Origin: Mustelus asterias
Taxonomy: Eukaryota
DNA length: 64,000 nucleotides
Direction of reading: 5' to 3'
NCBI RefSeq assembly: GCF_964213995.1
Contig: NW_027590154.1
Span: forward strand, 372,001-436,000
The position numbers were made by a program, and so were the translations under genes. The notes below the pieces were generated by a model. The model saw only the letters and a list, made by a program, of their open reading frames with translations. It ran no database searches and was not told where the DNA came from. Positions 4,301 to 63,020 of the stretch are shown piece after piece (the first letter of the stretch is position 1; each line of letters opens with the position of its first letter).

Positions 4301-4667
4301 TCGTGTCGTGCCAAAAAGCACGATTTCACTGCCATCTCCTGGATCACCTCTGCTATTGCAGATGTTGGGAAATGCTGATTTTAGTTGCTGTTTCTTACTA
4401 TTTAATGGGCTGTATTCCCAGCAGGCAAGGCCAATGCATATGTTGGCAATCTGGATTTATTGGCTTTCTAGAACATCTCAGAGGGCGGGGAAGCACCAAT
4501 CGCTTGTGGGCCTGGAGTCATCTATCGGCCAAACTGGGAAACGATGGACAGTTTCCTTTTCTGCTGGGCATCAGAGAATCTGTTATATGTCTTGTAATGG
4601 CCGCAATTACGGAAACGAGCTTTAAATTCAAAATTGCAATTGCATTTCCAAACCCACGTTCTGTTAT

Positions 4668-6383
4668 GGAGCCCAAAGAAGTAGGGGAGATCCTAAATGA
4701 ATATTTTGCGTCGGTATTCACAAAGGAGAGGGATGTCTTGACTGGGAGTGTCTCGGAGCGGAGTGTTGAACCGTTGGAGAAAATCTCCATTACAAGGGAG
4801 GAAGTGTTAGGTTTGTTGGAGAATATAAAGACTGACAAATCCCCAGGGCCTGATGGAATCTATCCAAGGCTGCTCAGGGAGACGAGAGATGAAATCGCTG
4901 GGCCTCTGACGCAAATCTTTGTCTCGTCACTGGACGCAGGTGAGGTCCCAGAGGATTGGAGGATAGCTAATGTGGTCCCGTTATTTAAGAAGGGTAGGAA
5001 GGATAACCCGGGTAATTATAGGTCGGTGAGCTTGACGTCCGTGGTGGGGAAGTTGTTGGAGAAGATTCTTAGAGATAGGATGTACACGCATTTAATAATG
5101 AATAAACTCATTAACGATAGTCAGCATGATTTTGTGAGAGGGTGGCCATGCCTCACTAACCTGGTGGAGTTTTTTGAAGAAGTGACCAGAATGGTTGACG
5201 AGGAAAGGGCCGTGGATATCGTCTATATGAACTTTAGTAAAGCGTTTGACAAAGTCCCTCATGGTAGGCTGGTGAAAAAGGTTGGATCTCATGGGATAAA
5301 GGGGGAGGTGGTTAGATGGGTGGAGAACTGGCTTGGTCACAGAAGACAGAGGGTCGTAGTGGAAGGGTCTTTTTCCGGCTGGAGACCTGTGACTAGTGGT
5401 GTTCCGCAGGGCTCTGTATTGGGACCTCTGCTGTTTGTGATTTATATAAACAATCTGGAAGAAGGTGTAACTGGGGTGATCAGTAAGTTTGCGGACGACA
5501 CAAAATTGGCAGGACTTGCAGATAGTGAGGAGCATTGTCAGAAGCTACAGAAGGATATAGATAGGCTGGAAATTTGGGCAAAAAAATGGCAAATGGAGTT
5601 CAATCCTGATCAATGTGAAGTGATGCATTTTGGTAGAAATAATGTAGGGAGGAGCTATACGATAAATGGCAGAACCATAAAGGGTGTAGATACGTAGAGG
5701 GACCTGGGTGTACAAGTCCACAGATCCTTGAAGGTGACGTCACAGGTGGAGAAGGTGGTGAAGTAGGGATATGGCATGCTTGCCTTTATAGGACGGGGCA
5801 TAGAGTATAAAAGTTGGGGTCTGATGTTGCAGATGTATAGAACGTTGGTTCGGCCGCATTTGGAATACTGCGTCCAGTTCTGGTCGCCACACTACCAGAA
5901 GGACGTGGAGGCTTTGGAGAGAGTACAGAGGAGGTTTACCAGGATGCTGCCTGGTATGGAGGGGCTTAGTTATGAGGAGAGATTGGGTAAACTGGGGATG
6001 TTCTCCCTGGAAAGACGGAGGATGAGGGGAGACTTAATAGAGGTGTATAAAATTATGAAAGGCATAGATAGGGTGAACGGTGGGAAGCTTTTCCCCAGGT
6101 CAGTGGTGACATTCACGAGGGGTCATAGGTTCAAGTTGAAGGGGGGGTAGGTTTAACACAGATATCAGAAGGACATATTTTACACAGAGGGTGGTGGGAG
6201 CCTGGCATGCGCTGCCGGGCAAGGTGGTGGAGGCGGACACACTGGGAACGTTTAAGACTTATTTAGATAGCCATATGAACGGAGTGGGAATGGAGGGATA
6301 CAACAGAATGGTCTAGTTTGGACCAGGGAGCGGCACGGGTTTGGAGGGCCGAAGGGCCTGTTCCTGTGCTGTATTGTTCTTTG
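4668..6383 (+). mobile_element. CR1 LINE, 5'-truncated ORF2 with stops
   Basis: RT motifs in ORFs 4303-5697 and 5776-6150. Same subfamily as 129-1766. Confidence 0.93.
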
Positions 6384-12116: not shown

Positions 12117-15100
12117 AGAACCATAGAACCATAGAAAATTAAGCTCAGAAACAGGCCTTTTGGTCCTTCTTGTCTGTGCCGAACCATTTTTTGCCTAGTC
12201 CCACTGACCTGCACTTGGTCCATATCCCTCCACACCCCTCTCATCTATGAACCCGTCCGAGTTTTTCTTAAATGGTAAAAGTGACCCGCATTTACCACTT
12301 CATTCGGCAGCTCATTCCACACTCCCACCACTCTCTGCGTGAAGAAGCCCCCCCTAATATTCCCTTTAAACTTTTCTCCTTTCACCCTTAACCCATGCCC
12401 TCTGGTTTTTTTCTCCCCTAGCCTCAGCGGAAAAAGCCTGCTTGCATTCAAACTATCTATACCCATCAAAATCTTATACACCTCTATCAAATCTCCCCTC
12501 AATCTTCTGCGCTCCAGGGAATAAAGTCCCAACCTGTTCAATCTCTCTCTGTAACTCAGCTTCTCAAGTCCCGGCAACATCCTTGTGAACCTTCTCTGCA
12601 CTCTTTCAACCTTATTTACATCTTTCCTGTAACTAAGTGACCAAAACTATACACAATACTCCAAATTCGGCCTCACCAATGCCTTATATAACCTTACCAT
12701 AACACTCCAACTTTTATACTCGATACTCCGATTTATAAAGGCCAATGTACCAAAGGCACTCTTTACGACCCTATCCACCTGTGACGTCACTTTTAGGGAA
12801 TTCTGTACCTGTATTCACAGATCCCTCTGTTCAACTGCACTCTTCAGAGTCCTACCATTTACCATTACCAGTAATCATGAACCATTTACCATGAACCAGG
12901 CCAGGTGTTAGATTTGGAGGGAGGTGAGCACTTTGGTGACAGTGACCACAATTCGATTACGTTTACTTTAGCAATGGAAAAGGATAGGTATATACCAAAG
13001 GGCAAGAGTTATAGCTGGGGGAAAGGAAATTATGATGCGATTAGGCGAGATTTAGCTGGCATAGGTTGGGGAAGGAAACTGCAGGGGATGGGCACAATTG
13101 TAATGTGGAACTTGTTCAAGGAACAACTACTACGCGTCCTTGATAAATATGTATCTGTCAGGCAGGGAGGAAGCAGACGTGTGAGGGAACCGTGATTTAC
13201 TAAGGAGGTTGAATCTCTTGTGAAGAGGAAGAAGGAGACTTATGTTAAGATGAGACGTGAAGGCTCAGTTAGGGCGCTTGAGAGTTACAAGTTAGCCAGG
13301 AAGGACCTAAAGAAAGAGTTAAGAAGAGCCAGGAGGGGACATGAGAAGTCTTTGGCAGGTAGGATCAAGGAAAACCCTAAAGCTTTCTATAGGTATGTCA
13401 GGAGTAAAAGAATGACTAGGGTAAGATTAGGGCCAGTCAAGGACAGGAGTGGGAAGTTGTGCGTGGCGTCTGAAGAGATAGGAGAGGCACTAAATGAATA
13501 TTTTTCGTCGGTATTCACACTGGAGAGGGACAGTGTTGTTGAGGGGAGTACTGAGATGCAGGCTGTTGGACTGGATGGGATTGATGTTCAGAAGGAAGAG
13601 GTGTTAGCAATTCTGGAAAGGGTAAATATAGATAAGTCCCCTGGGCCGGATGGGATTTATCCTAGGATTCTCTGGGAGGCTAGACAGGAGATTGTAGAGC
13701 CTTTGGCTTTGATCTTTGTGTTGTAATTGTCTCCAGGAGCAGTGCCAGAAGACTGGAGGATAGCAAATGTTGTCCCCTTGTTCAAGAAGGGGAGTAGGGA
13801 CAACCCTGGTAATTATACACCGGTGAGCCTTACTTCTGTTGTGGGCAAAGTATTGGAAAGGATTATAAGAGATAGGATTTATAATCACCTCGAAAGGAAT
13901 AATTTGATTAGGGATAGTCAGCACGGTTTTGTGAAGGGTAGGTCGTGCCTCACAAACCTTATTGAGTTCTTTGAGAAGGTGACCAAAGAGGTGGATGAGG
14001 GTAAAGCGGTTGATGTGGTGTATATGGATTTCAGCAAAGCGTTTGATAAGGTCCCCCATGGTAAGCTTTTGCAGAAAATACGGGCACATGGGATTGAGGG
14101 TGATTTAGTGGTTTGGATCAGGAATTGGCGAGCTGTAAGAAAACAAAGGGTGGTGGTTGATGGGAAATATTCATCCTGGACTTCAGTTACTAGTGGTGGA
14201 CCGCAAGGATCTGTTTTGGGGCCACTGCTGTTTGTCATTTTTATTAGTGGCTTGGATGAGGGCGTGGAAGGATGGATTAGTAAATTTGCGGATGACACTA
14301 AAGTCGGTGGAGTTGTAGACAGTGCGCAGGGAAGTGGCAGGTTACAGAGGGACATAGATAAGCTGCAGAGTTGGGCTGAGAGGTGGCAAATGGAGTTTAA
14401 TGCGGAAAACTGTGAGGTGATTCACTTTGGAAGGAGTAACAGGAATACAGAGTACTGGGCTAATGGTAAGATACTTGGTAGTGTGGATGAACAGAGGGAT
14501 CTGGGTGTCCATGTGCATAGATCCCTGAAAGTTGGCACCCAGGTTGATAAGGTTGTTAAGAAGGCATACGGTGTGTTAGCTTTTATTCGTAGAGGGATTG
14601 AGTTTCGGAGCCAGGAGGTCATGCTGCAACTGTACAAAACTCTGGTGCGGCCGCATTTGGAGTTTTGCATACAGTTCTGGTCGCCGTATTATAGGAAAGA
14701 TGTGGAAGTGTTGGAAAGGGTGCAGAGGAGATTTACCAGGATGTTGCCTTGTATGGTGGGAAAATCATATGAGGAAAGGCTGAGGGGCTTGAGGTTGTTT
14801 TCGTTAGAGAGAAGAAGGTTAAGAGGTGACTTAATAGAGGCATACAAGATGATCAGAGGATTAGATAGGGTGGATAGTGAGAGCCTTTTTCCTCAGATGG
14901 TGTTGGCTAGCACGAGGGGACATAGCTCAAAATTGAGGGGTGAGAGATATAGGGCAGATGTTAGAGGTAGGTTCTTTACTCAGAGAGTAGTAAGGGCGTG
15001 GAATGCCCTGCCTGCAGCAGTGTTGGACTCGTCAACGTTGAGAGCGTTCAAGTGGTTATTGGATAAACATCTGGGTGATATTCGAATAGTGTAGATTAGA

Positions 15101-17030
15101 GGGGCTTTAGATTGGGACCACTGGTCGGCGCAACATCGAGGGCCGAAGGGCCTGTACTGCGCTGTAATGTTCTATGTTCTATTACTGTCCACTACACCTC
15201 CAATCTTTGTATCATCAGCAAACTTGCTGATCCAATTGACCACATTATCATCCAGATCATTGATATAGATGTCAAACAACAATGGACCCAACACCGATCC
15301 CTGCGGCACACCACTTGTCACAGGCCTCCACTCAGAGAAGCAATCCTCCACAACCACTCTCTGGCTTCTTCCATTAAGCCAGTGTCTAATCCAATTTACT
15401 ACCTCCCCATGTATACCACGCGACTGAACCTTCCTAACTAACCTCCCATGAGGGACCTTGTCAAAGGCCTTGCTGAAATCCAGGTAGACAACATCCACCG
15501 CCTTCCCTTCATCCACTTTCCTGGTAACCTCCTCGAAAAACTCTAATAGATTGGTCAAACATGACCTACCACGCACAAAGCCATGTTGACTCTCCCTAAT
15601 AAGTCCCTGTCTATCCAAATATTTGTAGATCCTATCCCTTATCAGACCTTCCAATAACTTGCCCACGACCGACGTCAAACTTACTGGCCGATAATTTCCC
15701 GGATTTCTTTTGGAAACTTTTTTAAACAACGGAACAACATGAGCCACCCTCCAATCATCCGGCACCTCCCCCGTGAATACTGACATTTTAAATATGTCTG
15801 CCAGGGCCCCTGCAAGTTCAACAATAGCTTCCCTCAAGGTCCGTGGGAATACCCTGTCAGGTCCTGGGGATTTATCCACTCTGATTTGCCTCAAGACAGC
15901 GAGCACCTCCTCCCCTTTAATCTGTAAAGGTTCCATGACCTCCCTACCTGTTTGCCCTATTTCCGTAGACTCCATGCCCGTTTCCTCAGTAAATAAGGAT
16001 GCAAATAAACCATTTAGTATCTCCCCCATCTCTTTTGGTTCCATACACAGTCTACCACTCTGGTCTTCAAGAGGACCAATTTTATCCCTCACTATCCTTT
16101 TGCTCCTAACATACATATAGAAGCTCTTTGGGTTTTCCTTCACTCTGTCTGCCAATGCAACCTCATGTCTTCTTTTAGCCCTCCTGATTTCCCTCTTAAG
16201 TAGCTTCTTGCACTTTTTATACTCCTCGAGCATCTGATCTGTTCCTTGCTGCCTGTACATTTCATACAACTCTCTCTTCCTCTTAATCAGTGTTACAATC
16301 TCCCTCGAGAACCAAGGTTCCTTAATCCTATTTACTTTGCCTTTAATCCTCACAGGAACATACAAACTCTGCACTCTCAAAATTTCTCCTTTGAAGGCCT
16401 CCCACTTTCCATTTACATCCTTACCAGAGAACAGCCTGTGCCAATCCAGACATCCCAGATCCCTTCTCATTTCATCAAATTTGGCCCTCTTTCCAATTCA
16501 GAACTTCAACCCGAGGACCAGATCTATCCTTATCCATGATCAGGTTGAAACTAATGGCATTATGATCACTGGATCCAAAGTGTTCCCTCACACTCACATC
16601 CATCACCTGCCCTAACTCATTTCCCAATAGGAGTACCAATATCGCATCCTCTCTAGTTGGCACCTCTATATACTGATGGAGAAAATTCTGAACACATTTT
16701 ACAAACTCTACCCCGTCTAAACCTTTAACAGTATGCGAGTCCCAATCTATATGTGGAAAATTAAAATCCCCTAATATCACAACTTTATGTTTCTTGCAGT
16801 TGTCAGCTATCTCTCCGCTGATTTGCTCCTCCAATTCTCGCTGACTATTGGGTGGTCTATAATACAAGCCCATTAATGTGGTCATACCTTTCCTGTTTCT
16901 CAGCTCCACCCATAGGGCCTCGGTAGACAAGCTCCCTCATCTACCCTGCCTGAGTACCTCTGTAACATTTTCCCTGACCAACAATGCCACCCCCACCCCC
17001 CCCCCCCCCCCACCTTTTATCCCTCTGCCT
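12117..17030 (-). mobile_element. CR1 ORF2 (endonuclease and RT), split by another CR1
   Basis: ORFs 16475-16930 (APE: YRPP, GDFN, SDH), 15172-16470 (RT) and 12245-12601 (C-terminus). (AGAACCAT)n tail at 12117. Confidence 0.88.
12885..15180 (+). mobile_element. CR1 ORF2, 5'-truncated, innermost element of the nest
   Basis: ORFs 12905-13195, 13220-13726 and 13727-15094 with RT motifs. (TGTTCTA)n tail. Confidence 0.93.
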
Positions 17031-20261: not shown

Positions 20262-20740
20262 ATGGGAATCCTCCTTGTTTTCACCCTATCTGTCTGTTTA
20301 CCCCGTGAGTACCGATCAAACTAATCCACAACGTGTGGATTGAATATAAATCTGTCCCAGTCCATCCCAATTACAGACACTGTCTGGGGTTTCAGCCCCG
20401 TTGTGTGGTTCTCCTCTGATGGTCCATTAAACTCTCCCTCTTTAATTTCCAGGATCTTTCAGTCAGTCAGTAACGCAGAGCCCGGCAGCGTTGACCAGGA
20501 AGGAGTGTCAGTCTCTCACCATCACCTGTATCTTTTACGGTCATAATTGGGGCTATTATTTCCAAAATGGATATTTCTTCAGACAAACCCAGACCGGGAC
20601 GGAGCGGGAGCGGATCTCCAGCGGAGGGAGATTTGTTGTGTCTGTGAACAGAGCAAAAAAGACATTTTCGCTGGAAATTCGGGATGTGCGAGTTGAAGAC
20701 ACCGCCACCTATTACTGTAAAGCTGATTACTGGTACTACA
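20262..20740 (+). CDS. NAR-TCR V gene segment (IgNAR-like V): leader exon 20262-20304 and V exon 20453-20740
   Basis: Leader MGILLVFTLSVCLP with phase-1 GT..AG intron. V reads SFSQSVTQSPAALTRKECQSLTITC...ERISSGGRFVVSVNRAKKTFSLEIRDVRVEDTATYYCKADYWY. It has the VNAR-type short FR2/CDR2 (ERISxGGR) and an extra FR1 Cys. Confidence 0.93.
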
Positions 20741-20778
20741 CACCGTGATGGGCCTCGACTTCCAGCGATACAAAAGCT
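20741..20778 (+). other. RSS of the NAR-TCR V (22-bp spacer)
   Basis: CACCGTG (20741-47), 22 bp, ACAAAAGCT (20770-78). Confidence 0.85.
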
Positions 20779-21119
20779 CTCCCTGCAGATTCTCACAGAA
20801 CCAAATGATAAACCGGAGTTAATCTGCCCTGAACACCCCCCACCCCCTCCCCCCTCCACCACCCGCCCCCGGCCAACCCCCCACAATAGCGTCTCACACT
20901 CTCTGTTTTAATGAGACCTGATTACTACCATGAACCTTTTGAGTTTTATAAACACGGAATGTGAGTGGATGGTGGTGTCTTTCCTGGGAATGTTGTCGGT
21001 GAATGGAGAATGGGAATGATTGATCCCAGTTGCAAACCCTCACACCAGATGGGATTCTGGACTCACAGCCACACTGCGCGCTGTTTAATTAATGTTCCAA
21101 CATCCCACCCAGTACCCGA

Positions 21120-21147
21120 GGTTTTGATACTGAATTGTAACACTGTG
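21120..21147 (+). other. 12-RSS, 5' signal of the NAR-TCR D segment
   Basis: GGTTTTGAT (21120-28), 12 bp, CACTGTG (21141-47). It faces the V RSS 341 bp upstream. Confidence 0.9.
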
Positions 21148-21165
21148 CAAATGGTTGGGGGGCGG
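21148..21165 (+). other. NAR-TCR D segment; 3' end fused to the inverted V-delta, exact end undefined
   Basis: G-rich CAAATGGTTGGGGGGCGG directly after the 12-RSS heptamer. No 3' RSS follows; a matching 12-RSS lies at 26901-26928. Confidence 0.75.
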
Positions 21166-21471
21166 CTATGTGCTGACTCAGTCCACAGTAATACACAGCC
21201 GAGTCGCTTAGTTGCAGTTTGGAGATCTTTAACCGGCTGATTTTCTGGACAGAATCGATAGAAGCAGTAATTCTCTCCCCGGCAGCGTTTTCTTTATTGT
21301 CCCCTCCTGAAGTGTGTTTCTGCAGCAAGTATTTCAGAGTTTGCCCTGGGGGCTGACTGTACCAGTGTACTGTGTACTGACAGATTCCTGAATATTCACA
21401 GCTTAATGTAACCGTGTCATCGGCAGCAGAGATTTGGAGAGGCGGATTCTTGGATACCAGGGAAGAGGAAT
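21166..21471 (-). CDS. Leaderless 'supporting' TCR delta V exon of NAR-TCR, now inverted
   Basis: Acceptor ttttttctaatcctgcag then DSSSLVSKNPPLQISAADDTVTLSCEYSGICQYTVHWYSQPPGQ...KLQLSDSAVYYCGLS. It has an extra CDR1 Cys, no adjacent leader seen, and a phase-1 acceptor matching the J donor at 26498. Confidence 0.9.
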
Positions 21472-21649
21472 CTGCAGGATTAGAAAAAAAGCGTTTGTTT
21501 AGGTTTTGCCATTTTTTAGTCGGAGATTGTGTCAGTCGCAGGAGTAGCTCAGTTTTATGCGGAGTTATTATTATTTTAATTCTAATGGAACGATATTGAC
21601 TTACGCTATAAACCAGTGTACAATGAGGTGACATTTTATTTTGCACAAG

Positions 21650-22135
21650 TTCTAATGATCTGTAACGATGTTATTAAACTGGAGGGAGTGCAGAAGAGAT
21701 TTACAAGGATGTTGCCAGGACTCAAGGGACTGAGTTATAGGGAGAGTTTGGACTTTTTCCTTTGGTGCGTAGGAGATAGAGGGGTGATCTTGTAGAAGTG
21801 TATAAGATCATAACAGGCACGGATAGGGCGAATGAACTCAGTCTTATTCCCAGGGTTGGGGAATCGAGAACAAGAGGGAATAGGGAAAGAAGTAACGGGA
21901 ACCTGCAGAGCAACTTCTTTTTACACAGAGGGTGGTACGTATATGGAATGAGCTGCCGGAGGAAGTGGTTGAGGCAGCGACATTGACAACATTTCAAAGG
22001 CATTTGGACAGATACATGGATAGGAAAGGTTTAGAGAGATATGGGCCAAATGCCGGCAAATGGCTGAGCTTAGATGAGCATTTTGATCGGCATGGATCAG
22101 TTTGGACCGAAGGGCCTGTCTTTCTGCAGTAAATT
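21650..22135 (+). mobile_element. CR1 3' fragment
   Basis: RFTRMLPG / RGDLVEVYK / VWNELP similarity. Confidence 0.85.
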
Positions 22136-23168
22136 CTGTGAATCCATGAATATACTGTCAGCTCAGTAGGAGCTGGTTTAACAGTGAATTATGAATGAGC
22201 AACGATCACATTCATGAACAGGAAAACAGCAGGTTTATCGGGAAAATTCATGGCTTGTGGAAGAATTCGATTTCATTTATAAAGGGGCAGCATCTACCCT
22301 AGGGGCCGAATGTCGCCCTTCCAGACGAAATGATTTTACGATATATGTTCGCTTTCAATTTCAGTTTTCCATGTTGAGAGACAAACCGAGGGAACATTTT
22401 ATTGTCAGTGACGCAATCCGTTTCCAGAAATGATTGTCAGAGAGTAACGCAGCTGCGTCACATCACAGCATACAGCAAGATCCAACAAAGAATGACTGTG
22501 ATTCATCAGCTCCAATGGGACCGAACCATGCCGAACAACGGTCGTCAAATGTCATACATTTATTTCAGTTTAACACTTCCTGAGAGTCTGTGTTTGCTTT
22601 TTAATCTATTTGTTTATTTTCTGTCAGTATCATGTTTTCTCCCCTTCACTTAACATTGAAATATCTAGTCAGTTTCATTTCATTTACTTTTTGCTGCTTG
22701 GGTTTCTTGTGTCGTGGGAGCATGCCCCAAAGTCTCATAGTTGCCAGTTGCGTTCATTCTGTTCAGTTTCCGCAGTGGTTTTACTGTTACTCACTGGGAA
22801 CTGCCTCTTCTGGATCTCCGACAATTTCGTTTTTTCTGCTCATTAACTGATTCTCTCCCGGCTCTGGGCAGAGTTTTCTCTAAGTTGTACATTTTATAGA
22901 AACTTCAGAAGAAGAAGAGACACTTCGGCCCACTCATTTATGTCTGTGGAAATACTCCAGACCAGCCTCAGCCCGCAGTTTTCTAATTGATTTTTCCCAT
23001 CCAGCTCCCTGTGTCAGTCTGATCTGTTCTCCCTCGGATCTTTTCAAGTCTTCCCATAGATGCGTCAATACCTGCTGCTCCAAACATTCAATGTGACAGT
23101 GAGTCCCTCTTCCTGGCTGATATTTAAAATTCTTCTTCTTAATGTTTAGATTTTCTCTGAATCACTAT

Positions 23169-24432
23169 TGTCAGGAGGCAGAAGTAGTTTATATAGTCTG
23201 TGATTGTATTATTGGATATTAGAAATAAGATATAGATTTAAGTGAGTTTAGTTTAGCGTTTCTGTGTAAGGTCGGGTAAAATTCTAGTTAGCTTGCTATT
23301 AAACAAAGATGTTTGCATGTATGTGGTTTTTGGTTCATTTTAAACTGTGCCTGTATTATGCTGAGGGAGTTAATGACATGAAAAATAAAAAGCTGTAAAG
23401 AAGGAATAGGCTGTTGCTTGGGAACCAGGAGCCACCTTTATGTTAGGAAGGGGTTTTACTGGACTCAAGGCCGTAGGAGATACGTAATGAGACAAAAAGC
23501 ACCTCTCACAGCTCTGCCAGAAGCAGAAGCAATAAAATGGAGTAATGAGAAAAAAGAACTTCCAGAAAATAAAGAACAGATCGTTTTAGAAACCAAGGAA
23601 TTGAAAAAGGTCCCAGGACAACTGAATTGAGAGGGCCAAAGGAACTCGAAACTGAACTATGTACTGTTTATCAAAGTTGAAGAAAGGGGCAGAGACAGAG
23701 GCCCCCAGCTAAATGCAGAGCTGAAATTCACAGACCTGGTGAAGTTGGCAAGCCAGCTTTCAGATATAATCATGATGTTGGTGAGACCAGTGAAGCAGTA
23801 TTGGCATGGCTGCATACCTCTGAGATTGTACGGAAACTTGAATGCACATGACAATTCAAGACAAAGGAATAGTGAAAGCAAAGTGCGAAATCCTGGAAGT
23901 GGATCCTTGCTGAAAATAGCGCAGGCAAAGGGTTATTTGGTAGAATTTACCAAGACAGGACTTTTCGAGAGTGGGAATGGGAAACACTCGTGTGGATGCC
24001 AGAGTCCAGTGAGGCCAGTTGGTTCACATCAGTATAATGATCTGCGGGGTTGTGAGGAGCAATCCACAGAAATTCGATTGGGTGGCATCGACAATTAGGT
24101 TTTGGAATGGGGTGTAGCTGACCACAGTGGCCTATTGCTATACAGGGACTGCATTTACGGAGAACAGTATAGCAAAGATATATTTTGCAACCTGTGTTAT
24201 CCTTAAAGTCTGCGTACAGTCATGAGGAGTTGGGCTGAAGGAGAATTGTGTCATAGTAAAACTTTTCATGTTTAATAAATGTTTGTTTCTTCTGTTACTA
24301 AAAGCTAATTGGCCATCCAGTTACTCCATTCCCCCAATTGTTCTAAAACAGAAGAAAACACTACATTATTTCTAACCAGAGTTGCACCTGGGAGTTTCCC
24401 ATCCAGTAGTAACATCAACTGGGATCGTAACA
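23169..24432 (+). mobile_element. Solo LTR, 1264 bp
   Basis: TGT...ACA termini, exact 4-bp target-site duplication CTAT (23165-68 and 24433-36), AATAAA near 24274. A related 3' end occurs at about 51890-51990. Confidence 0.75.
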
Positions 24433-24849
24433 CTATCAGATGTTAATAGCCCCTTGCTCCAGACATACCCAAAAATAAATAGTTTGGCCACATCCATCTC
24501 ATTAACCCGTTCATTAGTTGAACGATTTCAATGAGTCCTCTTTGCTGTTCTCCAATCTCTAGACGAAAAGAGACCCAGCATGTTCCCCACGTCCAGAGAT
24601 TGTTGCTGATTGCTTTCCTGAGAAATGCAGACATAGAAGCAACATTTCCAACTGATAGAAGCAAGAGTGGCTGTTCCACATTTCAAAGCTACGCAGTCAC
24701 TCAGTGATGTTGCAGTTTATCTTCTGCCTCAACAAGAAACTGACCCATTGGTAGGACAGACTCAGCAGACCTGGCGGCACAATGGGATATAATCGGAAGC
24801 GACTTGCCCGGAGAGTCCTCAATATCCTCCCTCGACTGCATGAAGACTC

Positions 24850-25682
24850 ATTACATCAGATCAGACATTGGCAAAGAAACCTGCTGATTCCCGCGTGCCT
24901 CTGCTGATGTGTCTACACTCCTCCATGTTGAACAACACATGGAGGAAGGACTGAGGATTGCGAGGGTGCAGAATGTACAATGGTAGGGGGACTTCAATAT
25001 CCATCGCTACGACTCTCTCGCTAGCACATAGCAAGATATAAGTGCTAGACTGGCAACTACCAAGAGGGAATAATGCATACTTGACCTCACCCTCAGCAAG
25101 CTGACTGTCGCAGCTGCACCACCAGAGCAGTATCAGTAGGACTGGCCACATAAAATCCTTGTGGACACAAAGTCCTGTTTTCACATTGAGCTACGCTCCA
25201 TCTTGTAGTGCGGCACCGTCACCGGACCGAATAGAATAGATTTCGAGCAGATCTAGCAACTCATTGCTCGGCATCCATGAAGCACTATGGGCCATCAGCA
25301 GCAGAATTGTACTCAAACACAATCTGTAACCTCATGGCCCAGCATGTCCCCTGCATTGACATTAGCAAACGAGGGAGTTACACTGGTCAATGAAGACTTT
25401 AGAAGGCAATCCCAGCAGCAACACCCGGCGTCCCTATAAATGAGTTGTCAATCTGCTGAAGATAAGGCTAAACCATTGGCAACAATCTTCATCCACAGGT
25501 ATCGAGTGGGTGATGCATCTCGACCTCCTCCGGAGGTCCCCAGCATCAGTGATGTCAGTCTTCATCCAGTTTGATTAACTCCACGTGACTTCAGGACCGG
25601 CTGAAGGCACTGGATGCTGCAAAGGCTATGGGCCCTGGAAATATCCCGGCAATATTACTGAAGACTTGTGCTCCAGAACTAA
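24850..25682 (+). mobile_element. Degenerate non-LTR retrotransposon fragment (endonuclease to RT linker)
   Basis: GGGGACTTCAAT (GDFN) and AAGGCTATGGGCCCTG (KAMGP) remnants. Confidence 0.6.
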
Positions 25683-26497
25683 CCACTAACGGTGGTAAAT
25701 AAGAAAAAGTGATTTGTTAAATTGAGGGTATTTAAAGAAATATCAGGTACAACGTCAGTAATTTCAGTCACTGATTTCTCGATTACAACATTCCTCTGGA
25801 CCACCAATAAGTACACTTAGACCTGAAGTCCGTTGTGTCATTTTCCTTTTTGTCACCTGGGTCATGTATTGAATGAGTCGCTGCTGTTAAATGAATTGGC
25901 CGCAGTGATATTCATCTCATTCAGCCGGTATACTATTGATATTGCAAGGGTAGGACTGCAATCTACTGCCCAAGAGAAAGCTCTGGGACCCTGCACCGGG
26001 TTGTAAGCGACAGACAGATCTCCCTCAGTCACATTTAGTAGCCAGAGTGGATTCCGGAGTGTTGTAAATTTGAGCTTGTTAAAAACTATCAGAAGTGACA
26101 GAGTTCTTGATGTTGACGTGCCCCTTTCAATCAATAATCTCCCAGATGCTGTCAACTCCCACATCACATCTAACACGAGCACCCGCACCCCACGCTTCAC
26201 CACCCTTTACCCCGAACCCACTGCCCACCCCCCCCCCCCACCCCCGCCCCGCACGAGCTTCGCCCCGCTATCCTTGTCCCGCTGACCGCCGACTCCATCA
26301 GGTCTCACAGACATTTTTCCCGGGACTGACCTGGACCCGACTCCAGAATCACATCCAGCTCCCAACTCGAAATCTGTAACGGATGATTTTCCACAGGAAG
26401 ATTGGATTGGATTGAAACGAGACAGATCACAATGATAAAGTGATCGGGAACATTAAACGATAAAATCTGTAACACGGCGGGGTTTGGAACCACTTAC

Positions 26498-26550
26498 CGG
26501 CTGTGACAGTCACCACCGTCCCGGATCCATCTCCAGAATCATCATCGGCC
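26498..26550 (-). other. NAR-TCR J segment (IgNAR/IgH-like), inverted
   Basis: Encodes ADDDSGDGSGTVVTVTA with a GxGT motif and a phase-1 donor G|GTAAGT. Confidence 0.92.
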
Positions 26551-26589
26551 CACAGTGGCACCGCTCTCAGTCTCCTCAGTACAAGATCC
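26551..26589 (-). other. 23-RSS of the J segment
   Basis: On the + strand: CACAGTG (26551-57), 23 bp, ACAAGATCC (26581-89). Confidence 0.9.
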
Positions 26590-26900
26590 ACCGACATCTC
26601 AATCTGCCGGGAAATCATCACCACTCATTCAGTAGTGTCCAATTTTTGGGGGGATTTAAAATTAATAAATAATATTCATTGTTTCAAAGTCTCTGTCCGT
26701 TCAAATTGTACTTTGTGAGGTCCGAGTTCTCAGTAAATGGCCGCAGGAAGGAAATATTCACTTCATACATCGCAAAAAAAATTAAAGAAAGATGGGAATG
26801 GTGGGGATTACAGTAACAGTAGTCCAGATTACAGCGAAAATAACATCAAATCAATGATTCACTATCTGGGCCCTGAGAATTTATATTGTAATTGTGCACA

Positions 26901-26967
26901 GGTATTTGCTCAGCTCCTTTTCACTGTGCACAGTGATACAGAACACGGAGAGAGCTGTACAAAAACC
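26901..26967. other. Precise 12/23 RSS signal joint
   Basis: GGTATTTGC, 12 bp, CACTGTG (26922-28) fused directly to CACAGTG (26929-35), 23 bp, ACAAAAACC (26959-67). Confidence 0.95.
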
Positions 26968-27150
26968 TGAACATGGCGAGGATGACAGACACAGTGATAC
27001 AGAACACGGAGAGTGCTGCACAAAAACCTGAACATGGCGAGGATTACAGACACAGTGATACAGAACACGGAGGGAGCTGCACAAAAACCTGAACATGGTG
27101 AGGATTAGAGACACAGTGATACAGAACACGGAGAGAGATGTGCTGAAAAC
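26929..27150 (+). repeat. 61-bp tandem repeat whose unit is a 23-RSS plus a 22-bp linker (3 complete, 1 degenerate)
   Basis: Heptamers at 26929, 26990, 27051 and 27112. ACAAAAACC nonamers at 26959, 27020 and 27081. Confidence 0.95.
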
Positions 27151-34654: not shown

Positions 34655-35982
34655 TTGGAAGGGATTATAAGAGATCGGATTTATAATCACCTAGAAAGGA
34701 ATAATTTGATTAGGGATAGTCAGCACGGTTTTGTGAAGGGTAGGTCGTGCCTCACAAACCTTATTGAGTTCTTTGAGAAGGTGATCAAAGAGGTGGATGA
34801 GGGTAAAGCGGTTAGTGTGGTGTATATGGATTTCAGCAAAGCGTTTGATAAGGTTCCCTAGGTAAGCTTTTGCAGAAAATACGGACACATGGGATTGAGG
34901 GTGATACAGTGGTTTGGATCAGGAATTGGCTAGCTGTAAGAAGACAGAGGGTGGTGGTTGATGGGAAATATTCATCCTGGAGTTCAGTTACTAGTGGTGT
35001 ACCGCAAGGATCTGTTTTGGGGCCACTGCTGTTTGTCATTTTTATTAATGACCTGGATGAGGGCGTAGAAGGATGGATTAGTAAATTTGCGGATGACACT
35101 AAAGTCGGTGGAGTTGTAGACAGTGCGAAGGGAAGTGGCAGGTTACAGAGGGACATAGATAAGCTGCAGAGCTGGGCTGAGAGGTGGCAAATGGAGTTTA
35201 ATGCGGAAACGTGTGAGGTTATTCACTTTGGAAGGAGTAACAGGAATACAGAGTACTGGGCTACTGGTAAGATACTTGGTAGTGTGGATGAACAGAGGGA
35301 TCTGGGTGTCCATGTGCATAGATCCCTGAAAGTTGGCACCCAGGTTGATAGGGTTGTTAAGAAGGCGTACGGTGTGTTAGTTTTTATTGGTAGAGGGATT
35401 GAGTTTCAGAGCCAGGAGGTCATGCTGCAACTGTACAAAACTCTGGTGCGGCCGCACTTGGAGTATTGCGTACAGTTCTGGTCGCCACATTATAGGAAAG
35501 ATGTGGAAGTGTTGGAAAGGGTGCAGAGGAGATTTATCAGGATGTTGCCTGGTATGGTGGGAAAATTGTATGAGGAAAGGCTGAGGTACTTGAGGTTGTT
35601 TTCGTTAGAGAGAAGAAGTTTAAGAGGTGACTTAATAGAGGCATACAAGATGATCAGAGGATTAGAGAGGGTGGATAGTGAGAGCCTTTTTCCTCGGATG
35701 GTGATCGCTAACACGAGGGGGCATAACTTTAAATTGAGGGGTGAGAGATATAGGACAGATGTTCGAGGTAGGTTCTTTTCTCAGAGAGTAGTAAGGGCGT
35801 GGAATGCCCTGCCTGCAGCAGTAGTGGACTCGTCAACAGTAAGAACATTCAAATGGTTATTGGATAAACATATGGATGATATTGGAATAGTGTCGATTAG
35901 ATGGGCTTTAGATTAGTTTCACTGGTCGGCGCAACATCGAGGGCCGAAGGGCCTGTACTGCGCTGTAATGTTCTATGTTCGA
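34655..35982 (+). mobile_element. CR1 RT 3' fragment
   Basis: 348-aa ORF, highly similar to 13855-15180. Confidence 0.93.
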
Positions 35983-37048: not shown

Positions 37049-37359
37049 NNNNNNNNNNNNNNNNNNNNNNNNNNNNNNNNNNNNNNNNNNNNNNNNNNNN
37101 NNNNNNNNNNNNNNNNNNNNNNNNNNNNNNNNNNNNNNNNNNNNNNNNNNNNNNNNNNNNNNNNNNNNNNNNNNNNNNNNNNNNNNNNNNNNNNNNNNNN
37201 NNNNNNNNNNNNNNNNNNNNNNNNNNNNNNNNNNNNNNNNNNNNNNNNNNNNNNNNNNNNNNNNNNNNNNNNNNNNNNNNNNNNNNNNNNNNNNNNNNNN
37301 NNNNNNNNNNNNNNNNNNNNNNNNNNNNNNNNNNNNNNNNNNNNNNNNNNNNNNNNNNN
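37049..37359. other. Assembly gap (311 N)
   Basis: Run of N. Confidence 1.
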
Positions 37360-44883: not shown

Positions 44884-45409
44884 GGTTTTTGTACGGGGTT
44901 TCAGCTGTAATCTAATGCTGTGTCTCACTGCACAGTAATAGACCGCCCGTCCTCCAAACTGAGGGCGCTTATATTGAGGGAGCCGCTCTGTGTGGACTTG
45001 TCAGTAGCCGCCAGATATCGTCCTGAAACTTCATTTTCCTCCACTACGAGTGCATTGGTAATAATCCATCTCGGTGGCTGTGCCGGTTTCTGCTGATACC
45101 ATTGCATGTAGCTCATCTCCTTGTCTGTATAGTTACAATCCAACTGCACCGAATCCCCTTCTGATGCTGTTATTGTCACCGGTGACTGAGTTACTGGATC
45201 TGCGCACAGTCCACCTGTAAAGGTAGAGGAATTAAATATCAAGAGTTCATGTAAATTTATAGTTTTTGGAACCTCCCATCTACACCTCACATGGATATTT
45301 TTGATGGTTAATTAAATTGGCATCTTTGTGTATAAATATGTTTCCGTGGTTTGATGAACGTTATCCGGTACTTACTGTGCAAGAGCGCCGCCAGAATGAT
45401 CAGAAACAT
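44884..45409 (-). pseudogene. TCR alpha-like V segment with a 1-nt frameshift just before YYC (leader 45409-45376, V exon 45214-44923, 23-RSS 44922-44884)
   Basis: MFLIILAALLHS/GLCADPVTQSP...VQLDCNY...MQWYQQ...LSLED, then a shifted frame AVYYCAVR. RSS CACAGCA, 23 bp, ACAAAAACC. Confidence 0.9.
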
Positions 45410-46955: not shown

Positions 46956-49900
46956 TGTGTTGTTTCTGCATGATGTGGGAGCTGGTGGACCCCACTGTTG
47001 TTCCCAGTGAGCATGTCTGCAGTAAGTGTTGGTTGCTTGAGGTACTCCGGCTCAGGGTTGATGAGCTGGAGTCTGAGCTTCAGACACTGCGACATATCAG
47101 GGAGGGGGAGAGTTACCTGGACGCTGTGTTTCAGGAAGCAGTCACACCCCTTAGACTAACTAATTCAGCCGGGGGTCAGGGACAAGAGGGTGTGGCTGCG
47201 AGCGAGGCAGGAAGTGGGATCCAGAAGGTAGAGTTGCAAGAGCCTCAGTCCCTGAATCTGTGCAACACGTTTGAGATTCTTGCTCCCAGTGTGGACGGGA
47301 ATGGGGACTGCAAGGAGGACGAGCAAACTGCCCACGGCACCATGGTACAGGGAGCCGTTCAGGTGGAAGAAGAAAAAAGAAATGTAGTGGTAATTGGGGA
47401 TAGTGTAGTTAGGGGTATTGACACTGTTCTTTGTGACCAAGATCGAGAATACCAAAGGTTGTGTTGCCTGCCTGGTGCTTGGGTCCAGGACATCTCATCT
47501 GGGCTGCAGAGGAACTTGGAGTGGGAGGGTAAGAATCCAGTTGTAGTGGTCCACGTAGGTGCCAACGACATAGGCAGAACAGGAACAGTGGTTCTGCAGA
47601 GGGAGTATGAAAAGCTAGGAGCCAAATTAAAAAGCAGAACCAACAAGGTGGTAATCTCTGGATTACTACCTGAGTCACAAGCGAATTGGCGTAGGGTCAA
47701 TAAGATTAAGGAGGTAAATGGGTGGCTCAAAGATTGGTGTGGGAGGAATGGGTTTGAATTCATGGGATATTGGCACCAGTATTGGGGAAGATGGGACCTG
47801 TTCAGATGGGATGGTCTTCGTCTGAATCGTGCTGGGACCAGAGTCCTGGCGAATCGTATAACCAGGGCTGTAAATAGGGCTTTAAACTGAATAGTGGGGG
47901 GGGGGGGGGTGAGGGAGGGAGGGTTCAGGGGCATGGGGAATTACAAAATCAAAGGTAAAGGAGAGGGTACGAGTGCAGGTTAATGATGAGGACATTCACC
48001 GAGTTAAAGGAGTCAAGGGCTCAGGCAGAGTAAAAAAGGTGACAAACACAAGAAGAGCGGTGGTTAACACAGTGCAAGGAGATGGTCTGGGGAAGGATAA
48101 CCAGTTTGAGACAGGTAGGGACAGAGCGTGCAATCAGAAGAATGCACTAACAAATCAGGTCCATATAAAGGCTAGCATAAAGACACTTTACCTGAATGCA
48201 CGTAGCATTCGAAACAAAGTGAATGAGTTGATGGCACAAATCAGTACAAATGGGTATGATCTAGTGGCCATTACAGAAACGTGGTTGCAGGGTGACCAGG
48301 ACTGGGAACTGAATATCCAGGGGTATCAGACATTTCGGAAGGATAGACAGGAAGGAAAAGGAGGTGGGGTAGCTCTGTTAATTAAAGATAACATCAGGGC
48401 GGTAGTGAGAGACGATATAGGCTCTAAGGAGCAGAATGTGGAATCGTTGTGGATGGAGATAAGGAATAGTAAGGGGAGAAAGTCACCGGTGGGCGTGGTC
48501 TATAGGCCCCCAAATAATAACTTTGAGGTGGGTCGGGCTATAAACAAGCAAATAATGGGTGCGTGCAAAAACGGAACAGCAATAATCATGGGGGATTTTA
48601 ACCTGCATATTGATTGGTTGACTCAAGTCGGACACGGTGGACTTGAGGAAGAGTTCTTAGAATGCTGTCGGGATCGTTTCCTCGAACAGTATGTTACAGA
48701 ACCTACGAGGGAGCAAGCTATCTTGGATCTGGTCCTGTGTAATGAGACAGGTAAAATTAATGATCTTCTTGTGAGGGATCTTCTTGGAATGAGTGATCAC
48801 AATATGGTTGAATTTCTAATACAAATGGAGGGAGAGAAAATAGGGTCCCAAACCAGTGTCCTCTGCTTGAACACAGGGGAGTACAATAGGATGAGGGCAG
48901 AATTGGCTAATGTAGACTGGGAGTGCAGACTAGTTGGTAGGACAGCTGAGCAACAGTGGTGGATTTTTAAGGAGATTTTTCTCAGTACTCAGCAAAAATA
49001 TGTTCCTGTGATAAAGGGGAAATATGAATACATAAGGCAGCTAATTAGAGGAGTAAATTGGAAGGAGGGATTCTCGGGGAAATCTACTGAAGAGAGGTGG
49101 CAGTTTTTCAAGGAATGTCTGTCTAGGGTTCTACAGGACAATGTTCCGAGCAGGCAGGGAGGAGTTGGTAGGTTAAAGGAACCGTGGTGCACGAAAGCTG
49201 TGTGGGACCTAGTCGAGAAGAAAGGAAGTGTATAAAAGGCTTAGAGAGCTTGGCGAAGATAGGGATTTAGAAGAGTATAGGGCTTGTAGGAAGGGACTAA
49301 AGAAGGAAATTTGGAGAGCCAGAAGGGGTCACGAGAAAGCCTTGGCAAGTAGAATTAAGGAAAACCCTAAGGCGCTTTATAAATATGTGAAGAGTAAAAG
49401 GATGAGACACGAAGGAATAGGGCCTATAAAAGGTGAAGGCGGGAAAGTCTGTACGAAACCAGTAGAAATGGCAGAGGTGCTTAATGAGTATTTTGCCTCG
49501 GTTTTCACAGAGGAGAAGGACATGGGTGGATGTACTGTGGGCTTGCGGTGGATTGAAAAGATTGAGTATGTGGACTTTAACAAAGAGGTTGGAATCTTTG
49601 AATGGCATCAAGATAGATAAGTCGCTGGGTCTGGATGGGATATACCCCAGGTTACTGTGGGAGGCAAGGGAAGAGATTGCAGAGCCTCTGGCGATGATCT
49701 TTGCGTCGTCGATGGAGACGGGAGAGGTTCCGGAGGATTGCGGATGTGGTTCCTATTTTCAAGAAGGGGAATAGGGATAGCCCAGGAAATTACTGACCGG
49801 TGAGTCTAACCTCAGTGGTTGGTAAGCTGATGGAGAAGATCCTGAGGGACAAGATTTATGAGCATTTAGAGAGGTTTAGTATGCTCAAGAATACTCAGCA

Positions 49901-52842: not shown

Positions 52843-54048
52843 TTACTCGTGAATTCTTTGGTGCCTAAGCAGGTAGGATGACCGAGTGAATCTCTTCCCA
52901 CTTTCAGAGCAGGTGAATGGCCTCTCCCCAGTGTGAGCTCGCTTGTGTCTCAGTAGGGTGGAGGACTGAATGAATCCCTTCCCACATTCAGAGCAGGTGA
53001 ATGGCTTTTCCCCAGTGTGGGTGCGCTGGTGTAGAATGAGATCATATGATCGCTTGAACCCAGTCCCACAGTGAGAGCACCTGAACGGTCTCTCATCAGT
53101 GTGAACACGTTGATGGGAAGTCAGTTCACCAGAACTTTTATAGCACTTCTCACAGTCAGAGCATTTAAAAGGTCTCTCCCCGGTGTGAACTCGCTGGTGT
53201 GTCAATAGGTGGGATGACCGAGTGAATCCCTTCCCACAGCAGGAGCAGGTGAATGGCCTCTCCCCAGTGTGAATTCGCTGGTGTTGCAGCAGGCGGGATG
53301 ACCGAGTGAATCCCTTTCCACACTTGGAGCAGGTGAATGGCCTTTCCCCAGTGTGGATGCGCTGGTGTGGAATGAGGTCATATGATCGCTTGAACCCAGT
53401 CCCACAGTGAGAGCACCTGAACGGTCTCTCATCAGTGTGAACACGTTGGTGGGACATCAGTTCATCAGCACTTTTATAGCACTTCCCACAGTCAGAGCAT
53501 TTAAAAGGTCTCTCCCCAGTGTGAACTCGCTGGTGTGTCATCAGTTGGGATGACCGAGTGAATCCCTTTCCACACTCGGAGCAGGTGAATGGTCTCTCCC
53601 CAGTGTGAATTCGCTGGTGTACAGTGAGGTTATGTGAATGCTGGAACCCAATCCCACAGTGAGAGCACCTGAATGGTCTCTCATCAGTGTGAACACGTTG
53701 ATGGGACATCAGTTCCCAAGAACTTTTGAAGCACTTCCCACAGTCTGAGCATTTAAAAGGTCTCTCATCAGTGTGAACTCGCTGATGAGTAAGTAGGTGG
53801 GATGACTGAGTGAAACCCTTCCCACACTCAGAGCAGGTGAACGGTCTCTCCCCAGTGTGACTGCGTTGATGAGTTTCCAGCTGGGATGGGTAATTAAATT
53901 CCTTCCCACAGTCCACACATTTCCACAGTTTTTCCAAGGAGTGGCTGCACTTACGTTTTGACAGGCCAGAGGATCGGCTGAAGCCTCGTCTACACACAGA
54001 ACCCGTGTACAGTTTCTCTCCACTGTGAATAGTGCTTTTTCCTTCCAT
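52843..54048 (-). CDS. Tandem C2H2 zinc-finger protein, 401 aa (12 canonical and 2 degenerate fingers)
   Basis: Repeated CxxC-x12-HxxxH with TGERPF/TDERPF linkers. Likely splice acceptor tttcacag at 54156-58. Upstream exons not defined. Confidence 0.92.
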
Positions 54049-61004: not shown

Positions 61005-63020
61005 AGTCCATAAGACCATAAGACATAGGAGCGGAAGTAAGGCCATTCGGCCCATCGAGTCCACTCCACCATTCAATCATGGTTGATTTCAACTCCATTT
61101 ACCCGCTCTCTCCCCATAGCCCTTAATTCCTCGAGAAATCAAGAATTTATCAATTTCTGTCTTGAAGACGCTCAACGTCTCGGCCTCCACAGCCCTCTGT
61201 GGCAATGAATTCCACAGACCCACCACTCTCTGGCTGAAGAAATTTCTCCTCATCTCTGTTCTAAAGTGACTCCCTTTTATTCTAAGGCTGTGCCCCCGCG
61301 TCCTAGTCTCCCCTGTTAATGGAAACAACTTCCCTACGTCCATCCTATCTAAGCCGTTCATTATCTTGTAAGTTTCTATCAGATCTCCCCTCAACCTCCT
61401 AAACTCCAATGAATATAATCCCACGATCCTCAGACGTTCATCGTATGTCAGGCCTACCATTCCTGGGATCATCCGTGTGAATCTCCGCTGGACCCGCTCC
61501 AGTGCCAGTATGTCCTTCCTGAGGTGTGGGGCCCAAAATTGCTCACAGTACTCCAAATGGGGCCTAACCAGTGCTTTATAAAGCCTCAGAAGTACATCCC
61601 TGCTTTTGTATTCCAAGCCTCTTGAGATAAATGACAACATTACATTTGCTTTCTTAATTACGGACTCAACCTGCAAGTTTACCTTTAGAGAATCCTGGAC
61701 TAGGACTCCCAAGTCCCTTTGCACTTTAGCATTATGAATTTTGTCACCGTTTAGAAAATAGTCCATGCCTCTATTCTTTTTTCCAAAGTGTACGACCTCG
61801 CACTTGCCCACGTTGAATTTCATCAGCCACTTCTTGGACCACTCTCCTAAACTGTCTAAATCTTTCTGCAGCCTCCCCACCTCCTCAATACTACCTGCCC
61901 CTCCACCTATCTTTGTATCATCGGCAAACTTTGCCAGAATGCTCCCAGTCCTGTCATCTAGATCGTTAATATATAAAGAGAACAGCTGTGGCCCCAACAC
62001 TGAACCCTGCGGGACACCACTTGTCAGCGGTTGCCATTCTGAGAAAGAACCTTTTATCCCAACTCTCTGCCTTCTGTCTGACAGCCAATCGTCAATCCAT
62101 GTTAGTACCTTGCCTTGAATACCATGGGCCCTTATTTTACTCAGCAGTCTCCCGTGAGGCACCTTGTCAAAGGCCTTTTGGAAGTCAAGATAGATAACAT
62201 CCATTGGCTCTCCTTGGTCTAACCTATTTGTTATCTCTTCAAAGAACTCTAACAGGTTTGTCAGGCACGACCTCCCCTTACTAAATCCATGCTGACTTGT
62301 CTTAATCCGACCCTGCACTTCCAAGAATTTAGAAATCTCATCCTTAACGATGGATTCTAGAATTTTGCCAACAACTGAGGTTAGGCTAATTGGCCTATAA
62401 TTTTCCATCTTTTTTCTTGTTCCCTTCTTGAACAGTGGGGTTACAACAGCGATTTTCCAATCCTCTGGGACTTTCCCTGACTCCAGTGACTTTTGAAAGA
62501 TCATAACTAACGCCTCCACTATTTCTTCAGCTATCTCCTTTAGAACTCTAGGATGTAGCCCATCTGGGCCCGGAGATTTATCAATTTTCAGACCTTTTAG
62601 TTTCTCTAGCACTTTCTCCTTTGTGATGGCAACCATATTCAACTCTGCCCCCTGACTTTCCTGAATTGTTGGGATATTACTCATGTCTTCTACTGTGAAG
62701 ACTGACGCAAAGTACTTATTAAGTTCCTCAGCTATTTCCTTGTCTCCCATCACTAGATTACCAGTGTCATTTTGGAGCGGCCCAATGTCTACTTTTGCCT
62801 CCCGTTTGTTTTTAATGTATTTAAAGAAACTTTTACTATCATTCCTAATGTTACTGGCTAGCCTACCTTCATATTTGATCCTCTCCTTCCTTATTTCTCT
62901 CTTTGTTATCCTCTGTTTGTTTTTATAGCCTTCCCAATCTTCTGACTTCCCACTACTCTTTGCCACATTATAGGCTCTCTCTTTTGCCTTGATGCATTCC
63001 CTGACTTCCTTTGTCAGCCA
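61005..63020 (-). mobile_element. Young CR1, 5'-truncated, with an uninterrupted 625-aa RT ORF
   Basis: ORF 61089-62966 with intact FADD. (CATAAGAC)n tail. Confidence 0.95.

Follow-up and report, generated by a model that had tools for sequence, protein, structure and literature searches.

How could the V and D segments of a shark antigen-receptor cassette come to stand on one strand and its J and second V segments on the other, with two recombination signal sequences (RSSs) fused heptamer to heptamer at its far end? This question is raised by a 64-kb stretch of Mustelus asterias DNA (contig NW_027590154.1, positions 372,001 to 436,000; hereafter the window, whose first letter is position 1), which holds one cassette of the NAR-TCR family of T-cell receptor (TCR) genes, at about 20.26-27.14 kb. 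The arrangement was almost certainly produced by a standard 12/23 RAG inversion of positions 21166-26928. Indeed, both breakpoints lie on heptamer borders and the two fused signals are the very two that the segments have lost, which argues for this mechanism; the dependence on RAG1/RAG2 we infer from the border precision and the 12/23 pairing only. On the whole, a RAG inversion product residing in the germline is the best explanation of the locus, and we consider it probable.

A scan of the whole window gave 27 RSS rows, 7 of which belong to the cassette. A protein search with the frame of the supporting V-delta returned 18 matches at E<=1e-5 among 28 candidates. The best were the two-V-domain NCBI models P0001 and P0002 of Mustelus asterias, followed by P0003, the single open reading frame (ORF) of a 1007-bp ENA contig; the V-delta is 96%, 92% and 89% identical to them, respectively. 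An earlier note on this DNA had placed the V and the D 5' 12-RSS on the + strand and the J and the supporting V-delta on the - strand, and the exon positions confirm it. The parts of the cassette are as follows.

20262..20304, + strand: leader exon of the NAR-TCR V (MGILLVFTLSVCLP plus a split codon), with a GT donor at 20305; it matches the N-terminus of P0001 and P0002.
20453..20740, + strand: NAR-TCR V exon, an intact ORF (Pfam V-set, E=4.4e-08).
20741..20778, + strand: 23-RSS of the NAR-TCR V, with a 22-nt spacer, heptamer 6/7 and nonamer 7/9 (RSS scan).
21120..21147, + strand: D 5' 12-RSS in the order nonamer-12-heptamer, 7/7 + 7/9 (RSS scan).
21148..21165, + strand: NAR-TCR D of 18 nt, which borders the coding joint from the left with its 3' end.
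21166..21471, - strand: supporting TCR-delta V exon, leaderless, with an open frame (Pfam V-set, E=1.6e-13).
21472..26497, - strand: intron of 5026 bp between the J and the supporting V, with repeat insertions.
26498..26550, - strand: NAR-TCR J (..GDGSGTVVTVTA, split codon), with a GT donor at 26497; the J portion of P0001 and P0002 corresponds to it.
26551..26589, - strand: 23-RSS of the J, heptamer 7/7, nonamer 7/9 (RSS scan).
26590..26900, - strand: former sequence between D and J, 311 bp, inverted along with the J (from the coordinates).
26901..26928, - strand (read 26928->26901): 12-RSS, 7/7 + 7/9, the left half of the signal joint and former 3' signal of the D (RSS scan).
26929..26967, + strand: 23-RSS, 7/7 + 9/9, which makes up the right half of the signal joint and is the former signal of the supporting V-delta (RSS scan).
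26929..27137, + strand: tandem array of a 61-bp unit in 3.4 copies with 94% matches, every unit opening with a 23-RSS.

The signal joint is flush. The heptamers of the 12-RSS and the 23-RSS touch at 26928/26929 with zero bases gained or lost, and on this fusion the RSS scan agrees with the earlier note. Where the heptamers abut they form a GTGCAC site, and the second GTGCAC against which the note had cautioned is present at 26894-26899. The 14-mer made of the two heptamers occurs a single time in the window, against 0.01 expected; in a shuffle control, a match with at most one mismatch arose in 1/100 shuffles. The 23-RSS of the joint is also the first unit of the 61-bp array, in which the signals at 26929, 26990 and 27051 each score 7/7 + 9/9 and the nonamer of the fourth unit is decayed.

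The reciprocal coding joint lies at 21165/21166, where the D runs straight into the inverted V-delta, as had been claimed: it meets the reverse complement of the V-delta 3' end with no gap. The signals expected at this place are missing, again in line with the first observation, the RSS scan at its threshold finding no RSS 3' of the D on the + strand and none 3' of the V-delta on the - strand. The only heptamer-like string near the joint is a cryptic one at 21184-21190, located inside the YYC codons and devoid of a nonamer. By tblastn, the V-delta of the relatives aligns on the window down to 21164. The protein P0001 terminates with H-I-A-Q, with no residue beyond; were the V end of the window continued by the heptamer of the 23-RSS and one base of its spacer (the first), the translation would be exactly H-I-A-Q plus a stop codon, and the window itself reads ...H-I-A and then the reversed D. 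Since the end of P0001 equals this predicted reading, the V-delta end appears to be untrimmed at the coding joint, a judgement obtained by back-reading the protein, not the DNA, of a paralogue 96% identical. At its 3' end the D has lost 0-2 nt, the uncertainty coming from the paralogue contigs (the 'both 2' entry). At most 2 nt were lost in all. Every base of the joint can be assigned, so the coding joint has no N region.

Which segments owned the two fused signals is shown by the relatives of the cassette. Logan contigs of four public runs (X7, X8, X9 and X2) were aligned on 21040-27039 (6000 letters, likeness 88). Two contigs of X7 (depth 78.6, shorter side 39) and two of X8 (depth 115.5) carry a joint from 21165 to 26930 between opposite strands, which is absent in X9 and X2. 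Each passes from the D 5' RSS through the D into the 12-RSS located at 26928->26901 in the window. Since the depth of this joint is 3-4 times that of the unique contigs of the locus (21-25 in X7, 24-32 in X8), these contigs must come mostly from paralogous cassettes. P0003 offers the corresponding view of the other signal. By tblastn, 21490->21164 of the - strand is matched by its residues 9-117 (89% identity), and 26929-27148 of the + strand by its residues from about 118 to 216, with each of the three frames represented (64-77%). In P0003 the supporting V thus runs directly into the co-oriented 23-RSS array, whereas 5.8 kb separate the two in the window, where their orientations are opposed. 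Furthermore, in all three relatives that read beyond the V end (P0001, P0002 and P0003), the residues after YYC are, on back-reading, those encoded by a directly adjoining heptamer. Since the contigs join the D to the 12-RSS and P0003 reads from the V into the array, these data confirm that the 12-RSS belonged to the D and the 23-RSS to the supporting V-delta. The earlier note had named the paralogues in advance as the place where this assignment could fail; there, the X7 and X8 contigs as well as P0003 favour it.

A different joint, from 21147 to 26928, is seen in X7 and X8 (side 27 in both) and in X2 (side 41). It leads from the D 5' heptamer straight to the region of the D 3' heptamer. Its source could be a cassette whose D differs and is unaligned, or else a fusion of two 12-RSS heptamers without any D.

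With the signals assigned in this way, a simple course of events can be proposed. The original + strand order would have been leader - NAR V - 23-RSS / 12-RSS - D - 12-RSS / 23-RSS - J / intron / supporting V-delta - 23-RSS array. In such a cassette the D 3' 12-RSS would have two legal 23-RSS partners, that of the J and that of the supporting V-delta. The former, 311 bp off and facing the D 3' signal, would give a normal deletion; the latter, about 5.7 kb off and pointing in the same direction as the D 3' 12-RSS, would give an inversion. RAG would have brought the D 3' signal and the V-delta signal together and made its two cuts at the borders between heptamer and coding sequence. End joining would then have turned the 5763 bp of 21166-26928 around, generating the coding joint at 21165/21166 and the signal joint at 26928/26929, with the J, the D-J spacer and the intron carried along in the inverted segment.

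Several features of the window fit this course. Flipping 21166-26928 restores a canonical cassette with 341 bp (20779-21119) between the V 23-RSS and the D 5' 12-RSS and 311 bp (26590-26900) between the D 3' and J signals, the same spacings as had been calculated before. The fused pair satisfies the 12/23 rule. Both marks of a standard inversional V(D)J reaction are present, namely a flush 12/23 signal joint and a reciprocal coding joint between the segments that owned the signals; the general joining rules are summarised in PMC2193153. The claim that RAG joined the D 3' 12-RSS to the V-delta 23-RSS instead of that of the J is therefore supported by the geometry and by the sequences of the relatives. 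A hybrid joint was considered and rejected, because the two signals are fused with each other, and so are the two coding ends.

The window cassette is a broken member of the NAR-TCR family. According to PMC1845163 (elephant-shark genome), a NAR-TcR V is characterized by a leader, a Cys within its a-b loop and a missing WYRK Trp, and the delta V associated with it by the lack of a leader and a Cys in complementarity-determining region 1 (CDR1). All these hallmarks are found here. The a-b loop of the leader-bearing V contains the Cys (TRKEC), an F replaces the canonical Trp (YFFRQ), and the exon shares 76-80% identity with V domain 1 of P0001 and P0002. The leaderless supporting V has its AG acceptor at 21473-21472 and the CDR1 Cys in SGICQY. 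Moreover, P0001 and P0002 read ..VTVTA-D-(F/S)SSLVSKNPP over the same J/V-delta exon border as the window, and NAR V, J and supporting V are collinear within each of these proteins. The window thus resembles a canonical NAR-TCR cassette in its leader-bearing NAR V, its own D and J and a leaderless supporting V-delta spliced from the J. What it lacks is a collinear, single-strand layout in which V, D, J and the supporting V each keep an RSS of their own: its J and supporting V lie on the strand opposite to the V and D, and the D 3' and V-delta RSSs are displaced and fused. NARTCR V segments are plotted on shark scaffolds in PMC12227049, whose supplementary locus maps could bear on the orientation of cassettes.

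Two further observations concern the related copies. The P0001 and P0002 models carry the NAR V, a short junction and the J in one continuous stretch (..YYCKAQYRYGTREYDNVDGSGTVVTVTA), which could correspond to germline-joined NAR VDJ in other cassettes or to a gene-model artefact. In contigs of X7, X8 and X9, a form of the intron is seen without 22905-24670 (1766 bp), by a joint from 22904 to 24671 with one letter between. Contigs that contain 22905-24670 coexist with this skipping form, and the segment may be a copy-specific insertion or an indel polymorphism.

Judging from its geometry, the cassette would be dead as a NAR-TCR gene, because the NAR V and the D cannot reach the J; the inactivation already suggested for it is a sound deduction from this arrangement. 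A V-to-D join could still take place, since the 23-RSS of the NAR V faces the D 5' 12-RSS as before, but the V-delta added to the NAR V in this way would be backward. Likewise, the displaced 12-RSS is still faced by the 23-RSS of the J. The unit composed of J, intron and V-delta would be deprived of a promoter and leader, and the V-delta, which now ends in the D and a 12-RSS, should be unusable for the 5' 12-RSS of D-delta or the 12-RSS of J-delta. All parts of the cassette are nonetheless intact, with open frames, splice sites and consensus heptamers. Since every part is undecayed, the inversion must be a young event.

Is the inversion inherited, or did it take place in a lymphocyte? Origin from inherited DNA, on at least one haplotype of the sequenced animal, appears fairly likely, because the assembled piece is long, the joint is N-less and there is a precedent in sharks. 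The piece that carries the cassette measures at least 104 kb, which exceeds one long read. As for the joint, germline joins are recognised by a coding joint that is trimmed but devoid of a clear N region, and here the V is apparently untrimmed, the D has lost 0-2 nt and all bases are accounted for. The precedent is described in PMC2193156 (Lee, Fitch, Flajnik, Hsu 2000): the germline-joined NS4 light chains of the nurse shark are RAG-type joins in inherited DNA, and their joints are trimmed with little or no N region, unlike somatic joins and complementary DNA (cDNA). Their germline status was proven by Southern blotting of erythrocyte DNA from several animals. According to a more specific proposal, which we regard as only slightly better than an even chance, the inversion is inherited and goes back to RAG activity in the germ cells of houndsharks, where the NAR-TCR D and the signal of the supporting V-delta were brought together, leaving a pristine signal joint and an N-less coding joint.

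The locus itself is real, because unique intron contigs in X7 and X8 match it at about 99.6%. The run search found 9 runs from 4 studies, all as short contigs. The share of sampled window words was 0.65 in X7 and 0.64 in X8 (one sample), 0.22 in X9 (a different sample of the same study) and 0.05-0.07 in six runs of two other organisms. In X7, the contigs listed for 22092-26895 number 8 and show 15 differences over 3742 bp (99.6%); the contigs of X2, from a more distant organism, are about 91% alike to the window.

On the other hand, the same material weighs in several ways against an inherited inversion. The alignment listed the 32 longest pieces out of about 37,900; neither 21165/21166 nor 26928/26929 is spanned by any of them, and the listed X7 contig nearest to the signal joint ends at 26895. 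At 21268 and 21341 the letter of the window occurs in no aligned X7, X8 or X2 contig, X9 lacks it at 21268 and has zero depth at 21341, and the V exon of this copy is not demonstrably present in X7, X8, X2 or X9; at 26977 the window's letter is found only in X8 and X2. The same sample also holds the un-inverted D/12-RSS junction, whose depth is 3-4 times that of the unique contigs; though it must be mostly paralogous, it could include an un-inverted allele. A 53-aa query over the coding joint yielded no candidate in a database evidently sparse in shark short-read contigs. X7-X9 may, besides, derive from the same individual as the assembly, and a recent event would suit a somatic origin too. 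In the earlier note the inversion was called 'fixed' and possibly 'heritable', and neither word was supported: no independent contig among the listed pieces bridges the junctions, and the sample also contains the un-inverted junction between D and 12-RSS. That the inversion is heritable is plausible, but unproven. An argument from depth arithmetic in the bin 21040-21239, which left about one single-copy equivalent once the un-inverted joints had been deducted, was rejected, the left flank being shared by both arrangements.

The most serious competitor supposes the same RAG inversion to have been somatic, in a developing T cell (or by early mosaicism), with rearranged reads threaded into the assembly of an animal whose germline is un-inverted. 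Thymocyte RAG could legally combine the D 3' 12-RSS with the 23-RSS of the V-delta, and such an origin would also suit the undecayed state of all parts, the un-inverted junction in the runs and the lack of an independent contig over the junctions among the listed pieces. We find it rather unlikely all the same. Polyclonal tissue gives each rearrangement too few reads to win the consensus in a piece of at least 104 kb, and the coding joint is free of N nucleotides, though additions of the terminal deoxynucleotidyl transferase (TdT) type are usual in somatic shark joins (PMC2193156). The unique intron contigs of X7 and X8, with their match of about 99.6%, likewise speak for a real locus.

Alternatively, the cassette could be a native working design, meant to rearrange by inversion and with no event in its past. 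Inverted V segments that rearrange by inversion do exist in other loci (PMC2193153), and the J and supporting V are co-oriented with two neighbouring conventional V genes. However, a flush heptamer fusion of a 12- and a 23-RSS and an RSS-less fusion of D and V are products of recombination, not substrates for it. No legal series of joins would yield a leader-NAR VDJ spliced to a still-rearrangeable V-delta, the relatives show un-inverted junctions and the P0001 and P0002 models are collinear, which makes such a design very improbable. Mis-assembly, or a non-RAG inversion (by replication error or microhomology) that ended at RSS borders by chance, is just as hard to credit even in a multi-copy, repeat-rich and error-prone region (depths from hundreds to 100,000s; ORFs of long interspersed nuclear elements, LINEs), given that assemblers and replication errors do not respect RSS borders, both breakpoints fall exactly on heptamer/coding borders, the lost signals are exactly the fused two, their pairing obeys 12/23 and the 14-mer has a chance expectation of 0.01.

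Somatic inversional V(D)J recombination with a retained signal joint is well known for the inverted V segments of the mammalian kappa, TRB and TRD loci. The putative germline inversion of the window shares its chemistry and topology, with co-oriented 12- and 23-RSSs, a flush signal joint in cis and the coding joint elsewhere. The somatic reaction, however, occurs in lymphocytes, between partners meant to join, and gives a functional gene, whereas the partners in the window were never meant to meet.

In shark immunoglobulin (Ig) clusters, germline joining by RAG and one germline inversion by RAG are already established (PMC2193156 and PMC2193153). As in the NS4 genes of PMC2193156, the join in the window is of the RAG type, with trimming but no N, and split paralogues exist alongside. 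The NS4 genes are deletional V-J (or V-D-J) joins in Ig clusters that leave no chromosomal signal joint and give usable genes. The window cassette differs in being a TCR-delta/NAR-TCR inversion between segments never to be joined, with both products kept, the gene destroyed and a germline status that is putative. The second case, discussed in PMC2193153 (Lewis commentary 2000), is a germline inversion of the segment intervening between D1 and D2 in a shark Ig heavy chain (IgH) cluster. It was explained as a hybrid joint, and hybrid-joint inversion was proposed as a means to swap 12- and 23-RSSs between segments. The two cases are alike in that an inversion between two RSSs within one antigen-receptor cluster is attributed to RAG, in the D1-D2 case as a site-specific recombinase at work in the germline. 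In the D1-D2 case the joints are hybrid ones (signal to coding end) and the segments stay usable, whereas the window has one signal joint and one coding joint and its V-delta gains a new type of signal (D plus 12-RSS).

No inverted or germline-rearranged NAR-TCR cassette and no retained signal joint in shark germline DNA were found in the open literature, a scope outside which lie J Immunol, the primary NAR-TCR paper and the supplements. If it is inherited, the event would be without precedent in that literature, as a V(D)J inversion in the germline that affects a TCR locus and keeps both standard products. Deletional joins discard the signal joint and so hide half of the germline reaction; an inherited inversion would keep both halves. 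It would then provide sequence-level evidence of a complete lymphocyte-type reaction in germ cells, comprising 12/23 pairing, a flush signal joint and a TdT-free, hairpin-processed coding joint, and would indicate that germline RAG also reaches TCR loci. Standard inversions, besides hybrid joints, could in this case give V segments a new RSS type and orientation in evolution. If the event is instead somatic, it would serve as a warning that reference assemblies of immune loci can carry lymphocyte rearrangements. The two-V design of NAR-TCR carries a built-in 12/23 hazard, the D 3' signal being compatible with the signal of the supporting V. This hazard raises the question of how thymocytes normally avoid the D-to-supporting-V join.

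Apart from the cassette, antigen-receptor segments are represented in the window by just two conventional V genes with leaders, both on the - strand.

about 40530->40060, - strand: conventional V of the TCR alpha/delta type, intact, with leader and intron; its 23-RSS lies at 40053->40015 (7/7 + 8/9).
about 45410->44925, - strand: conventional leader-bearing TCR V with a one-base frameshift and a weak heptamer (5/7).

The frame of the second gene shifts just before the YYC codons, near the end of framework region 3, as seen from a tblastn frame switch near 44950-44960; it is likely a pseudogene or affected by a homopolymer error. Before the inversion, the cassette would have stood tail to tail with both conventional V genes, with which its J and V-delta would only now be co-oriented.

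The V region is embedded in retrotransposon-rich DNA. ORFs for LINE reverse transcriptase/endonuclease occupy 132-1766, 4303-5694, 13727-15091 and 15175-16470, and further LINE ORFs are found at 34870-35913, 47973-49232 and 61092-62966. A C2H2 zinc-finger ORF of 401 aa, with about 12 fingers, lies at 52846-54048 on the - strand, and a run of N is present at 37049-37359.

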